Notes under the pieces: generated by a model | What the model was told of the DNA's origin: nothing | The model's input: the letters and a program-made list of their open reading frames with translations, nothing else | The model's database searches: none | Source: Piromyces finnis finn | Taxonomy: Eukaryota; Fungi; Neocallimastigomycota | Assembly: GCA_002104945.1 (NCBI GenBank) | Contig: MCFH01000008.1 | Coordinates: 744,001 to 808,000 of the forward strand | Direction of reading: 5' to 3' | DNA length: 64,000 bases | Translations under genes and position numbers: made by a program | Shown here: positions 510 to 7,994 of the stretch, one piece after another | Position numbering within the stretch: position 1 is the first letter of the stretch | How the letters are laid out: each line of letters starts with the position of its first letter

Positions 510-2168
510 ATGAAAAAAAATATATTATATATTATATTTTTATTAATAAAAGCAAAAAAGATTTTTCCAAAATGCTGGTCAGAAAAATTAGGTTTCAAGT
601 GTTGTAGAATTGATATACAACCGATATTCTCTGATTATGAAGGGATTTGGGGAGTTGAAGATGATCAATGGTGTGGTATAATAAATAGCCCATCTAAGAC
701 TGATAATTGTTTAAATAATAATTGTTGTACAAAGACAGATACTCATGTTTCATTTATTGATGATGAAAAATCTTTATGGGGTATTGAATCAGGATCATGG
801 TGTAAAATAAATATCAATAACAATAATAATTCTGATAATTGTTGGAGTTCAAAATACGGCTATGGATGCTGTTTCAATGATAATGATGATGTTATATATA
901 GAGATGAAAAAGGATCTTGGGGAATTGAAAATAATCAATGGTGTGGTTTAACAAGTTATAAAAGTACAATCAACGTTGAAAATCTTCCAAATTTTCCTAA
1001 AAAAATTTTAGATCCAGAGACATATAAAGATCCAGCAAAAGATTGTAATATCACAGACTCAATTACAGGTGATTCATTAAAACAATATACTCCATTTAGA
1101 ATTGGGGTAGGCATTAATGGTGTGTCCAAAGAGACATCTGGAATTCTTTCAAAAAAAATGGATGATATAATTTTATACCAATTTAATAGTATTACATTAA
1201 CAAATTTATTAAAACCACAATATATATTAAGTCAAAGTATAACCCAAGGAAATCTTCAAAGAGGATCTGATGAACCAGGATTAGATTTTAGTGCTGCAAT
1301 TGATACATTAGAATTTTGTAAAAAGCATAATTTAAAAATGAGAGGTCATACATTAGTTTGGCATACTCAAACCCCATTATGGTTTTTTAAAGAAAAATAT
1401 AATGCTAACAATAAATATGTTACAAAAGAAGTGATGGAATTTCGAATGGAAAGTTATATACGACAAGTTATGCAATTTATACAATATTATTATCCAGGTA
1501 TTGTTGATGTTTGGGATGTTGTTAATGAAGCTGTTGAAATTGACGAAGGAAAATATGATATAAATTCAACATGGAAAACTCGTACCAAGTACGGTAATAA
1601 TGAACCTAATCCATGGTATGATACCATGGGACAGGATTATGTTATAACTGCGTTTAGAATTGCACGTAAATATGCAATGCCAGGAGTTAAATTAGTTTAT
1701 AACGATTATAATACTTTTATGAGTGAAAAAGCCAAAGCTATTTATACTTTATTAGAAATCTTAAAAAAGGAAGATTTAATAGATGGTATTGGATTGCAAT
1801 CTTATCTTGGCCCAAGTTGGCCCAACCGTACAGGTTATTCTGACGCAATAAAAAAATTTTCAGCTTTAAATTTAGAAATTCAAATTACAGAATTAACAAT
1901 TTCTATTAATACAGAAGTAGAAGAAGAAGATATGCTTATACAACAAGCTGATCAATATAAAGAAGTATTTAATATATATTTAAATTTATATCACACTGGT
2001 ATTAATATTGGAAGTGTAACTGTATTTGGTTTACAAGACGGTTTTAGATTTTATGAAAGCGATTCAACAAAAACTCGTTTATGGGATCATGATCTAATTA
2101 AAAAGAAAGCTTATTATTCTATTCTAGAAGTATTAAAAACATACTACAATAAATATAATAACGTATAA
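510..2168 (+). CDS. Secreted GH10 endo-xylanase-like enzyme with three N-terminal fungal dockerin (NCDD/CBM10-like) domains; intronless
   Basis: 552-aa ORF. Hydrophobic N-terminus, three CW..GY.CC...D..G.WG.E...WCG-type repeats (the second is degenerate), then GH10 motifs RGHTLVWH, WDVVNE (acid/base), YNDYN and QITEL (nucleophile). Confidence 0.93.
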   Translation: MKKNILYIIFLLIKAKKIFPKCWSEKLGFKCCRIDIQPIFSDYEGIWGVEDDQWCGIINSPSKTDNCLNNNCCTKTDTHVSFIDDEKSLWGIESGSWCKININNNNNSDNCWSSKYGYGCCFNDNDDVIYRDEKGSWGIENNQWCGLTSYKSTINVENLPNFPKKILDPETYKDPAKDCNITDSITGDSLKQYTPFRIGVGINGVSKETSGILSKKMDDIILYQFNSITLTNLLKPQYILSQSITQGNLQRGSDEPGLDFSAAIDTLEFCKKHNLKMRGHTLVWHTQTPLWFFKEKYNANNKYVTKEVMEFRMESYIRQVMQFIQYYYPGIVDVWDVVNEAVEIDEGKYDINSTWKTRTKYGNNEPNPWYDTMGQDYVITAFRIARKYAMPGVKLVYNDYNTFMSEKAKAIYTLLEILKKEDLIDGIGLQSYLGPSWPNRTGYSDAIKKFSALNLEIQITELTISINTEVEEEDMLIQQADQYKEVFNIYLNLYHTGINIGSVTVFGLQDGFRFYESDSTKTRLWDHDLIKKKAYYSILEVLKTYYNKYNNV

Positions 2169-2827: not shown

Positions 2828-5374
2828 ATGAAATTTAAAAATATTGTTCTTATCGTAGCATTTCAATTTTTAAGCATTAGTGTATTATTTTCTAATGCAG
2901 AACATGTTAATAATAATCAGTCAATAAAAAATCCAGAGAGTGAATTTAAAGAAAATAAAAAAGATTTAGGATACTGTTGTGTAAGTTTATATATTACTTT
3001 TTGATAAAAATATAAATATATATATTTTTTAATTTTAAACAAATTGAATAATAATATTAATGATATCAAATACTTCACATAGTTTCATGGAACTATTTCT
3101 GATTCTTGTTGTAAATATGAATCAGTTGAAGCTATGAATAAAGAACTTTCTTCAACATTAAATGAATTGGTTCAAACTACTTTCTTCCGTTATTATAAGG
3201 TATTTAAAATGTTAATGATAATAGTAATTAAAAAAAAGTAAAAATAATATATCAGTATATATTATATAAGGTTAATGGGTTTATATTCTATTATTTGGAA
3301 TATTAATATTTAAATAGGTTGATTTATGGAAGGAATGTCCATTTTGGCCAGACGCTGGTTTATTATGTACAAGTGAACGTTGCTCTGTTCCATCTGTTGA
3401 TGATGTAAAAATTAGTTAATATACTTATTATTAAAATATTTCTGAGAAAGTATATATATATACTTATAGAGTAAAAATTTTTATTTGTTTTATTTTTGAA
3501 TTTATTATTTAATAATAAAAATGATTAATGTAATAATTAAAAAAGGAAAAAATTCCTAAAGAATGGAAAGTAGAAAATCTTAGTAAAGTGGAAAAGAATT
3601 CAATATTTAGCGATTTATCTATGATTAATAATTGTGACTATAACTCAAAGGACTTTTGTATATTTGATGATGAATCAAGTGGTATGTAGTTTAAAAATAT
3701 TTACATATATTAAAAAAAATATATATATAATTTATTATTAATATTCTTATAATATGGGGTTTAAATATAGGTTTAAGATATGTAGATTTACCAACAAATC
3801 CAGAACGCTTTACAGGTTATCAAGGTGAACCTGCTAATCGTGTATGGGCTTCAATTTATTCAGAAAATTGTTTTGGTGTTCCAAATAATAACAAAGAAGC
3901 TATATCATGCTCAGAAAAACGTGTATTCTTTAAATTAATTTCAGGTAATAAATTTTAATGATTAATTATTAAGTTTCAATTTGGAAAAAAAAATTAATAT
4001 GTTTTTTTTTTATTATATTAACCTTTAATTAATGAAGGTCTTCACACATCAATTAATGCTAATGTTTGTCATGACTGGCTTGATGTTAAAACCGGACTTT
4101 GGGTATAATTTTTAAATATATATATATGTATATATACTTTTCACATATTTAAATAATGATATATTTTTTATATATATAAAAAATTTTTATAACCTTTTCT
4201 AAAGAAACCAAATCTTGATTGCTTTATATGGAAAATTGGTAAATTCCCAGATCGTATTGAAAATATATATTTGAATTATGCTATCTTTATTAGAGCTATC
4301 AGTAAATTATCAACATATTTGGATAATTATCATTACTGTAATGGAAGTGAGCAAGAAGATCTAGAAGTAACTGTAAGTTATTCTTATTATTTTTATAAAC
4401 AAATTTTATTTAAATAATGATGTAAATTTAATAATAAAAATTATTTAATATATATTTTTATATAAAGAAATTAATGAAAAAAGTTACTAGTATTACAAAT
4501 CAATACCCACCAACATTTGATGAGTCTCAATTTTTCAGTTCACCTGAAACTAAAGTATAATAAATTTATATAAAAATATAAAAATAAAAATATATTCTTA
4601 ATAGATTTAAATTTATAATAAATAGGATTTAATTGATGATATAAGATTCCAATTTAGAAATGTATCTCGTATTATGGACTGTGTTTCATGTGAAAAATGT
4701 CGTTTATGGGGAAAAATACAAATTACAGGATTAGGAACTGCTTTAAAGATTTTATTCTCATTGGATGGGTAAATTATAAAATTTAAAAAAAAAGTATATT
4801 TAAATAATTATAATTATGCTAATTTGAATTATTTATATATATTAAATATATTAAAATTATAAAAAGTGAGCTTGAAAACATTTCTCTCAAAAGAACTGAA
4901 GTTGTTTCATTAATTAACGCTTTTGCTAAACTTTCTAGTAGTTTAAACATTATCGATGAATTTAGAGAAATGTGGAAGAAACATGATGAAGAAAAAGCCA
5001 AAGGAAAGATTAGAGTTACTATTGAAAATTCTATAAATAATATAACAGAAAAGATAAAATTTAGAGATTACAAGAACAAAGCTATTAATATTGCTTCAAA
5101 TAAATATGACTTCCTCTTAACAAAAATTCAAAAAGTATTAATAGATCAAAATATAATGGATGATTCTGATTTTGAAGACAGAAATAGAATTATTTTAATG
5201 ATTTCGGGTGCTGGTTTTACTATTCTTATCGGTATTTTACTTGTTATAAAACTTTTATTCAATATTATTTACTACAAATTTATTCATCAACACCATCATC
5301 ATCATAATTCACATGTTCATCATCATAAACATATTCATCATACAAAGAAAAATAACATCAAGAAGGAAAATTAA
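2828..5374 (+). CDS. ERO1: ER oxidoreductin Ero1, 10 exons, with a C-terminal TM helix and His-rich tail
   Basis: Spliced by eye with GT-AG introns (exon 1 2828-2980, exon 2 3083-3199, exon 3 3318-3404, etc.). Signal peptide; [16 protein letters not shown]; shuttle CTSERC (C-x4-C); [12 protein letters not shown]; [12 protein letters not shown]; [19 protein letters not shown]; [17 protein letters not shown] (CxxCxxC). The 4970-5374 ORF is part of the last exon. Confidence 0.94.
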
Positions 5375-6461: not shown

Positions 6462-7994
6462 TTATGATTTTAAAGCATTAATAATAGCACTGTAAACAGG
6501 CTTCTTTTGAAGGTTATGATCCCATAAACGAGTATCAGTACTATCACTATTATAGAATAAATAACCATCTTGTAAGCCGAAAACAGTAACACTGGTAATA
6601 TTAACACCACTTTTCTTTAAGTCTTTATATATTTTGAAAACTTGTTGGTAGTGAGTTGCTTGATTATTAAATTTATTACCAGAACCATCAGTTTTAATAG
6701 TTAATTCAGTAATTTGGATGTCAACGCCAAGAGAACTGAACTTTTGAATAGCACTCTTATAATCGTTACGGTTTGGCCAGTCAGCATTTAAGTAAGATTG
6801 AAGACCTACCGCATCAATTAAGTTTTCAGCTTTTAATAATTTTACAAGGTTACAGATAGCATTAGTTTTTTGTGACATAAAAGTATTGTAATCATTATAA
6901 ACAAGTTTAACGTCTTTATCAGCGTATTTACGAGCAATACGGAAAGCTTTAATGACATAATCTGGGCCCATAGTTTGATACCATGGATTTGGACTGTTAT
7001 TGTATCTTGTACGAGTATTCCATCCAGTGGAAGAATCATAACTACCATTATCAATTTCTACAGCTTCGTTAACAACATCCCATACATCAACAACACCTGG
7101 ATAATGACATTGAACAAATTGCAATACTTGCTTAATATAGCTTTCCATACGTTGTTCCATTTTTGATGAATTAACATAAGAACCACTATCTTGAAAATTT
7201 GTACGGAAGAACCAATCTGGTGTTTGAACATGCCAAACTAAGGTATGACCTCTCATATGAATATTATTTTGTTTACAAAATTCTAAACCATCAATAATGG
7301 TATCAAACTTTAAAACAGGCATATCATTACCATTTTTTGCATTAGTTTGTGATGCACTTTTATCTAACATATGTTCAGCTTTCATAAGATTGGAGTATGT
7401 AACAGAATTAAATTGATAAGCAATAAGCTCTCTCATTTTTTTAGAGTTAACAGTTGAAGTACTTTTATCACCACCATTTAATCCAACACCCATACGGAAT
7501 GGAGCAACTTTAGCTAAAGAATCTCCAGAAATAGAATCAGAAATGTTACAATTTTTGGCTGGATCATTGTATGAATCAACATCAATAAGTGATGGTTTAT
7601 TTGGAACATTAGCACATGTAGCAGCGGCAGAAGATTGTGATTGTGTAACAGTAGTTCTAGTGGTAGTAGTAGTTCTTGCAGCATTATTAATTATACCACA
7701 CCAGTTATTGTTTTCGATACCCCACTTACCATCACTATCTTCATAAATTACTTCATTAGTATTAGTACAACATGGATAACCTAGGCTTGATGACCAACAT
7801 GTATTACTTGAATTATTATTTTGAATGCCACACCAGTCATTATTTTCTACACCCCACTTACCATCACTATCCTCTAAAATAACATCATTAGTAAAACTAC
7901 AACATCTGTATCCTAATCTTTCAGACCAGCAAGCAGCATTAACTTTGGCTGTAAAAACAACACCAATAATTGATAGTAGAGAAAAATATTTCAT
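6462..7994 (-). CDS. Secreted GH10 endo-xylanase-like enzyme with two dockerin domains and a Thr/Ser linker; intronless paralog of 510-2168
   Basis: 510-aa ORF. Signal peptide, two dockerin repeats, RTTTTTRTTVTQSQSS linker, and GH10 motifs RGHTLVWH, WDVVNE, YNDYN, QITEL. Confidence 0.95.
   Translation of the reverse strand: MKYFSLLSIIGVVFTAKVNAACWSERLGYRCCSFTNDVILEDSDGKWGVENNDWCGIQNNNSSNTCWSSSLGYPCCTNTNEVIYEDSDGKWGIENNNWCGIINNAARTTTTTRTTVTQSQSSAAATCANVPNKPSLIDVDSYNDPAKNCNISDSISGDSLAKVAPFRMGVGLNGGDKSTSTVNSKKMRELIAYQFNSVTYSNLMKAEHMLDKSASQTNAKNGNDMPVLKFDTIIDGLEFCKQNNIHMRGHTLVWHVQTPDWFFRTNFQDSGSYVNSSKMEQRMESYIKQVLQFVQCHYPGVVDVWDVVNEAVEIDNGSYDSSTGWNTRTRYNNSPNPWYQTMGPDYVIKAFRIARKYADKDVKLVYNDYNTFMSQKTNAICNLVKLLKAENLIDAVGLQSYLNADWPNRNDYKSAIQKFSSLGVDIQITELTIKTDGSGNKFNNQATHYQQVFKIYKDLKKSGVNITSVTVFGLQDGYLFYNSDSTDTRLWDHNLQKKPVYSAIINALKS

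Follow-up and report, generated by a model that had tools for sequence, protein, structure and literature searches.

How far can the active site of a xylanase be rebuilt while the enzyme remains a xylanase? Glycoside hydrolase family 10 (GH10) is one of the two main xylanase families, and its residues His205, Asp235, Trp273 and Trp281 (numbering of Cex, or Xyn10A, from Cellulomonas fimi) are normally treated as fixed. The stretch of DNA that we analyzed, referred to below as the window (64,000 nucleotides of Piromyces finnis contig MCFH01000008.1, positions 744,001 to 808,000), contains two GH10 genes whose products have none of the four. Gene A (510..2168, forward strand) is an intact open reading frame for a predicted secreted protein of 552 residues, with a signal peptide, three dockerin-like repeats and a GH10 domain. 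Gene B (6462..7994, reverse strand), also intact, codes for a 510-residue dockerin–GH10 paralogue that has the same variant residues and is 50% identical to the product of gene A. Judging from their sequences, the reading that we favor, while giving it somewhat less than an even chance, is that both proteins are active retaining xylanases of a distinct GH10 clade with altered glycone subsites. That they act on xylan in one way or another, altered or ordinary, is a good deal more probable.

Active-site residues of the two proteins

The residues were placed by a HMMER alignment to Xyn10B from Clostridium thermocellum (2w5f/2wys, E 6e-51) and by MAFFT alignments of 117 and 147 GH10 domains. Cex itself lies outside these alignments, and its residue numbers, which we take to apply here, are carried over from general knowledge.

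The initial annotation of this DNA had both paralogues keeping the pair of catalytic glutamates, and the alignments bear this out. In gene A, the conserved acid/base is Glu340 (in N339-E340; 1527..1529, forward strand, as for all coordinates in gene A) and the conserved nucleophile is Glu461; E310 and E430 are their counterparts in gene B. The acid/base is Glu in every alignable sequence. In Cex numbering, both proteins also keep Lys47, His80, Trp84, Asn126 and Gln203; the residues kept in gene A are K235, H280, W284, Q287, N339-E340, Y400, Q430 and T460-E461.

The changes in gene A are T231 (for E43), Y432 (H205), T463 (D235), F506 (W273) and F514 (W281). The motif of the −2 subsite, ENEMK or GNELK in canonical enzymes, reads T231-N-L233-L-K235 (1200..1214), so that both acidic residues are gone while Asn and Lys are kept. 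Y432 (1803..1805), at the end of strand β6 in the predicted structure, takes the place of the His that bonds to the nucleophile, as comparison with the rest of the clade also indicates; in the segment E461-L-T463 (1890..1898), T463 replaces the Asp partner of that His. The loop between β8 and α8, the usual site of Trp281, is rebuilt (2025..2078, F506 included): the loop alignment and the clade-discriminating positions single out F512, F514, Y515, D518 and R523, position 512 being Phe in gene A and Tyr in most members of the clade. Gene B has the same set (S201, L203, Y401, T432, F472, Y478, F480, Y481, D484 and R489). The His205–Asp235 network, a conserved feature of GH10 that is outside the formal definition of the family, is thus missing from both proteins (Y432/T463 in gene A, Y401/T432 in gene B), as are Trp273, Trp281 and Glu43 (F506/F514/T231 and F472/F480/S201).

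The alignment to Xyn10B, the MAFFT alignments and the predicted structure agree that these five substitutions, including the codon at 1803–1805, are where the initial annotation had put them. One of them is less telling than was thought: the replacement of Glu43 had been presented as unusual, but this residue is Gly in many canonical GH10 of the Ruminococcus type, whose motif is GNELK. Neither the alignments nor the predicted structure reveals a displaced canonical His, Asp or Trp elsewhere in the protein.

Two trivial origins of the substitutions were considered and rejected. An alignment artefact is ruled out, since three independent alignments and the topology of the predicted structure concur. 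Decay into a pseudogene is ruled out as well by the intact reading frames of both genes and by the conservation of the substituted residues throughout a deep clade; this supports selection of the remodeling, as had been proposed when the genes were first described.

The variant residues define a clade

A profile search of the P. finnis assembly (56.46 Mb, 232 contigs) for PF00331 returned 22 matches. The variant set is present at nine loci and the remainder are canonical, with the motifs ENxCK, QYH, TE[LM]D, VWG and SW. The variant had been described from the two paralogues of the window, and it is indeed in both, but it is not limited to them: five further loci lie within about 28 kb on one contig (C171) and two on another (C172), and a large clade of lipoproteins from Clostridia and Lachnospiraceae shares it. 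The C172 pair duplicates C171 copies, possibly as a product of the assembly; these seven loci (L013-L017, L019 and L020) are at C171:281126-309519 and C172:5256-9293. Several GH10 proteins that the assembly encodes outside the window are identical to database proteins of P. finnis (ownL019 to P0025, ownL015 to P0033). We also observed a GH10-like segment (L021, G000:C162:549172-549867) within an open frame of 1274 residues.

In the protein collection, the variant motifs are present in each of the 120 homologues closest to gene A. Those from other anaerobic fungi are 51–80% identical to gene A, and those from Butyrivibrio, Caldicoprobacter, Mobilitalea/Herbinix and uncultured Bacillota 46–50%; the bacterial carriers include Butyrivibrio, Herbinix, Acetatifactor, Caldicoprobacter and other Clostridia. 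In a set of 80 loci from species genomes, the two types divide at 40% identity: loci at or above this value have the variant set and loci below it the canonical one. In a tree of 147 sequences, the variant sequences form one clade (support of 96.6 in the Shimodaira–Hasegawa-like approximate likelihood ratio test, SH-aLRT), and the canonical GH10 of P. finnis form a separate group (100). The tree thus answers the question of whether the Tyr/Thr/Phe variant is a clade and whether bacterial relatives have it: both are so. His205 and Asp235 were lost jointly, on one branch, as had been suggested.

The fungal variant members share one branch (100) that is nested inside the bacterial sequences. This nesting fits a horizontal acquisition of the fungal genes from gut bacteria, the direction of transfer and the order of the changes depending on the outgroup rooting; an ancestor of the anaerobic gut fungi would have taken the clade from Clostridia resembling Lachnospiraceae. 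A study of horizontal transfer in these fungi (bioRxiv 10.1101/487215) discusses GH10 as one of the families that it examined. An innovation of the fungus is ruled out, since the bacterial clade has every change. The remodeling is older than the fungus, because the fungal genes descend from the lipoprotein clade of Clostridia and Lachnospiraceae.

A sister lineage of two sequences (L102 and L132) has Tyr at 205 and Thr or Ala at 235 and keeps Trp273 and Glu45; it forms a joint clade with the variant group (95.1) and looks like an intermediate stage of the remodeling. The simplest reading of these sequences is that His205 and Asp235 would have been lost first and jointly, and that the replacement of Trp by Phe, that of Glu45 by Leu and the rebuilding of the loop followed. 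The two sequences, from a Clostridia metagenome-assembled genome and from Lachnoclostridium sp. UBA3262 (G003:C33), respectively, have Asp for His85 and are on long branches. The coupling of His205 with Asp235 is not strict: in two metagenomic fusions of CBM96 to GH10 (P0075 and P0107), Thr occupies position 235 and Phe position 273, while position 205 is still His (QGH).

The remodeling goes beyond the positions listed in the initial annotation, as a comparison of 46 variant sequences with 61 canonical bacterial ones shows. In the canonical set, His205 and Trp273 are present in 61/61, while position 205 is Tyr in 41/46 and position 273 Phe in 44/46 variant sequences. The substitutions are not due to chance, because the canonical residues are invariant and their replacements near-uniform. 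At twelve positions the clade has a conserved residue that is seldom met outside it; in gene A numbering they include L233, Y432, F506, Y512, Y515, D518 and R523. L233 corresponds to a canonical Glu or Asp (Glu45 replaced by Leu), D518 lies within an insertion, and R523 replaces a residue that is Leu in 57/61 canonical sequences. The rebuilt β8–α8 loop has conserved Tyr, Tyr, Asp and Arg residues, and the net change in the cleft of the clade is the loss of three carboxylates and the gain of one Arg and one Asp.

The clade is not uniform. Butyrivibrio and Acetatifactor members have a shortened loop, a "QPT" form has Thr at 205, and a "DNPYSV" form is also seen. In the QPT subclade (L033, L038, L126, L144 and L145), Tyr also occupies the position of Arg523 (LYLW). 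A second group of fungal paralogues has more active-site changes (K47N, Y171H/V, Q203E and TEFT). The C171 and C172 loci have K47N, Y171H, N172D, TEFT and VYG, which suggests diversification among paralogues. Genes A and B are in the conservative fungal group.

Both catalytic glutamates are present in all alignable members, and nearly the whole clade, genes A and B included, retains this pair together with H80, W84, N126, Q203 and K47. This bears on the idea that these are feeble or non-hydrolytic proteins, either carbohydrate-binding components of the cellulosome or transglycosylases. The idea has some basis, since mutants of His205 in Cex lose orders of magnitude of activity. However, both glutamates, Asn126, His80 and Gln203 are conserved in more than 150 bacterial and fungal sequences, nothing speaks specifically for transglycosylation, and a role in binding only is unlikely because both catalytic glutamates are kept in every member tabulated. 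We consider a protein of this kind very unlikely.

Predicted structure and proposed mechanism

The AlphaFold model of the GH10 domain of gene A is of high confidence (predicted local distance difference test, pLDDT, 94.3; predicted template modeling score, pTM, 0.92). All of the top 50 Foldseek matches (50/50) are GH10 structures, the best being 2w5f (TM score 0.79), and strands β2, β6, β7 and β8 carry the substituted residues at their C-terminal ends, in a GH10-like arrangement. We found no solved structure inside the variant clade, the best Foldseek match being 32–33% identical. The nearest solved structure to genes A and B is the GH10 module of C. thermocellum Xyn10B (XynY; PDB 2w5f/2wys/2wze), which has in common with them the (β/α)8 barrel, a long insertion after the acid/base strand, and the motifs HTLVWH, NE, YNDYN and TEL. 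Unlike them, it has ENEMK, QSH, TELD, VWG and T-W; the corresponding motifs of genes A and B are TNLLK/SNLMK, QSY, TELT, VFG and F-Y. It falls under the identity boundary of about 40% that sets the variant clade apart. The comparison with canonical GH10 such as Cex is analogous: the family, the fold, the retaining mechanism with two glutamates and the −1 residues Lys47, His80, Trp84, Asn126 and Gln203 are shared, whereas the variant replaces the His205–Asp235 pair, Trp273, Trp281, Glu43 and the adjacent acidic residue, and has a rebuilt β8–α8 loop.

We propose that genes A and B code for secreted, cellulosome-docked and catalytically active retaining β-glycanases, in which catalysis would be of the ordinary double-displacement type. 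The part of His205–Asp235 as the hydrogen-bond partner of the nucleophile would fall to Tyr432, where β6 ends. A Tyr on β6 that is bonded to the nucleophile is the arrangement found in most other families of clan GH-A. GH5, GH1 and other families of the clan have this Tyr at the end of β6 beside the nucleophile of β7, as genes A and B appear to have; these are different families, and the analogy is drawn from the topology of the model. The glycone side would be reshaped, with two −2 carboxylates gone, both Trp walls replaced by Phe and a new loop of Tyr, Tyr, Asp and Arg, which would make the subsites wider and less acidic. The substrate is most probably still the β-1,4-xylan backbone, and the arabinosyl, feruloyl, acetyl or glucuronyl decorations accepted at −1/−2 probably differ from those accepted by the canonical paralogues of the same genomes.

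The same changes could be read as the sign of another substrate, either a hexose-based β-glycan or an anionic polysaccharide bearing uronic acids. In Cex, the C5 hydroxymethyl group of a gluco-substrate runs into Trp281 and Gln87. W273F and W281F/L would enlarge the −1 pocket, the smaller Phe walls leaving room for C6; the loss of three carboxylates and the gain of one Arg shift the charge; two metagenomic members (P0075 and P0107) have an N-terminal CBM96 and no classical xylan-binding module; and most of the bacterial genes lie outside xylan-utilization loci. On the other hand, Gln87 is kept, a fusion to an esterase and a GH51 neighbor in bacteria (see below) indicate arabinoxylan, and among the genomes examined the clade is confined to those that are xylanolytic and rich in GH10. 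We find a change of substrate of this sort quite unlikely.

A related proposal treats the clade as a GH10 subfamily with a function of its own, whose rebuilt glycone side (Glu43, Glu45 and the His–Asp pair replaced, Phe walls and the new loop) would confer a specificity that is unrecorded for GH10, be it one that needs or tolerates an acidic or esterified side chain at −2/−1 or one for a non-xylan glycan; this is conceivable, and we hold it only tentatively. To our knowledge, GH10 has no official subfamilies. A parallel may be drawn with GH30 subfamily 8, clan GH-A xylanases that recognize a glucuronic acid side chain at −2 through an Arg and aromatic residues of the β7/β8 loops: the variant clade gains an Arg and two Tyr in its β8–α8 loop, although the two groups are not homologues at the family level and the likeness is one of analogy. 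If the clade does have a distinct specificity, this would be why gut fungi took it up and multiplied it for use in their cellulosomes.

Bacterial relatives and their genomic context

All of the bacterial members inspected (17/17) have an N-terminal signal peptide that ends in Cys, followed in most cases by a low-complexity and often acidic linker, from which we infer that they are surface lipoproteins. The members from Butyrivibrio and other Lachnospiraceae would thus have a lipobox lipid anchor and an acidic linker where the fungal proteins have dockerins, and the loop of the Butyrivibrio subgroup is shortened (DHYR...RLFD). Xyn10E of Butyrivibrio proteoclasticus B316 (bpr_I1740, ADL34477.1) is secreted and is a clade member that shares the residue set; its gene is reported to be transcriptionally elevated (bioRxiv 10.1101/395103).

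In an Acetatifactor metagenome-assembled genome (L029:5710-8067), the variant GH10 is fused to a C-terminal esterase domain (PF00756) in a protein of 786 residues. The Lachnoclostridium member L033, of the QPT form, is encoded directly upstream of a GH51-type arabinofuranosidase gene, and one bacterial variant gene is located after an AraC regulator. The variant was seen only in genomes that also have canonical GH10: the four genomes examined have 2 to 12 PF00331 matches, and in them 1–11 other GH10 genes accompany the variant. About five carriers, all rich in GH10 (3 to 10 protein matches), turned up among 151 evenly sampled Lachnospiraceae species. The fusion, the GH51 neighbor and the GH10-rich genomes point to decorated xylan as the substrate.

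This context is also what would be expected if genes A and B coded for ordinary endo-1,4-β-xylanases, in which the substitutions compensate for one another, the specificity and kinetics are those of GH10 in general, and the clade is merely a sequence lineage. The swaps are of aromatic for aromatic residues and of hydrogen-bond donors for donors, databases label all members as endo-1,4-β-xylanases, and a clade member from Pecoramyces sp. F1 was deposited singly as "xylanase" (UOO00983.1), which suggests that it was cloned as such; the accession is mentioned in none of the papers searched. But at least 12 coordinated changes in active-site loops and a new Arg/Asp loop exceed what compensation needs, and the variant is kept beside 1–11 canonical GH10 genes per genome. 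The nine fungal loci and the retention beside canonical GH10 argue for a non-redundant role. We regard ordinary xylanases as an unlikely outcome, and retain altered glycone subsites as the preferred reading.

Published data on members of the clade

Jin et al. (2025) screened 173 "celsome" proteins of P. finnis, transcriptionally upregulated and fused to dockerins (PMC12421816). Gene B is celsome_086, matched over the first ~400 residues stored in the supplement, and celsome_091 and celsome_167 are variant paralogues (PMC12421816 supplement). The P. finnis GH10 with activity on xylan in that study, celsome_061 and celsome_069 (PMC12421816), are of the canonical type. Xyn10E from C. stercorarium, a trace xylanase and a possible member of the clade, has only 0.17 U/mg on arabinoxylan (PMC6106730); it is not used as evidence here. 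A search for it by means of the published primer gave no match in the loci searched, and nine metagenome matches are due to chance and have no GH10 open reading frame.

Several observations weigh against the mechanism and the substrate that we propose. The three variant proteins celsome_086, celsome_091 and celsome_167 are absent from the 17 soluble proteins of the screen (PMC12421816). In the literature we found no paper on the variant residue pattern and no assay or measured activity for any member of the clade. Some members have Thr or Asn instead of Tyr (the QPT and QCN types), so that this Tyr appears to be dispensable, and the role that it would have in place of His is deduced from the topology of the model and from what holds in the clan. 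The loss of three carboxylates and the gain of an Arg are equally compatible with a non-xylan or anionic substrate. Most bacterial variant genes are solitary among housekeeping genes, and the evidence from context is thin.

A conserved clade that replaces all four of the residues treated as fixed would amount to a natural experiment in the positioning of the clan GH-A nucleophile. Lachnospiraceae of the rumen and gut keep the variant next to canonical GH10, and in a gut fungus it has multiplied to nine dockerin-bearing loci. It is also a candidate source of new specificities for the cleavage of xylan or other glycans in biomass conversion. Members can be flagged in annotation by short motifs ([ST]NLMK, Q-x-Y, TEL[ST] and x-F-G), and the bacterial orthologues offer an alternative route for expression, the fungal proteins having failed in E. 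coli.

Architecture of genes A and B and other features of the window

The two genes face one another across a gap of about 4.3 kb. Both products have a hydrophobic N-terminus, read from the sequence as a putative secretion signal, then fungal dockerin repeats (three in gene A, two in gene B) and a C-terminal GH10 domain. PF00331 scores 231.8 bits in gene A and 250 bits in gene B (Pfam cut-off 22.1), and PF02013, the CBM10-type dockerin, 79.3 and 105.6 bits, respectively. The sole NCBIfam match, to a model of a bifunctional xylanase/feruloyl-esterase, is sub-threshold (121.6 bits for a cut-off of 1200) and uninformative.

The dockerin region of gene A (573..947) consists of three Cys/Trp repeats, residues 22–57, 67–100 and 111–146, which were located by Pfam CBM_10 (two stretches) and by a pattern scan; the middle repeat is degenerate. 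The initial annotation gave 1092..2140 as the limits of the GH10 domain. Alignment, the AlphaFold model and Foldseek do place the catalytic barrel there, but the conserved domain begins earlier, at about residue 165 (about nt 1002), a start that we adopt because this N-terminal segment is common to the bacterial homologues.

The public model of gene A (P0001, 336 residues, corresponding to residues 217–552) takes the internal Met217 as its start. Missing from it are residues 1–216 of gene A (510–1157), with the signal peptide, all three dockerin repeats and the first strand of the barrel. The long, uninterrupted reading frame of 552 residues is supported by full-length orthologues of 545–552 residues (P0002, of 552 residues, P0004 and P0005).

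The window is very AT-rich, with a GC content of about 0.19. Between the two GH10 genes lies an open reading frame of 134 residues (4970–5374, forward strand) with a hydrophobic segment and a His-rich tail, which may be spurious in such AT-rich DNA.

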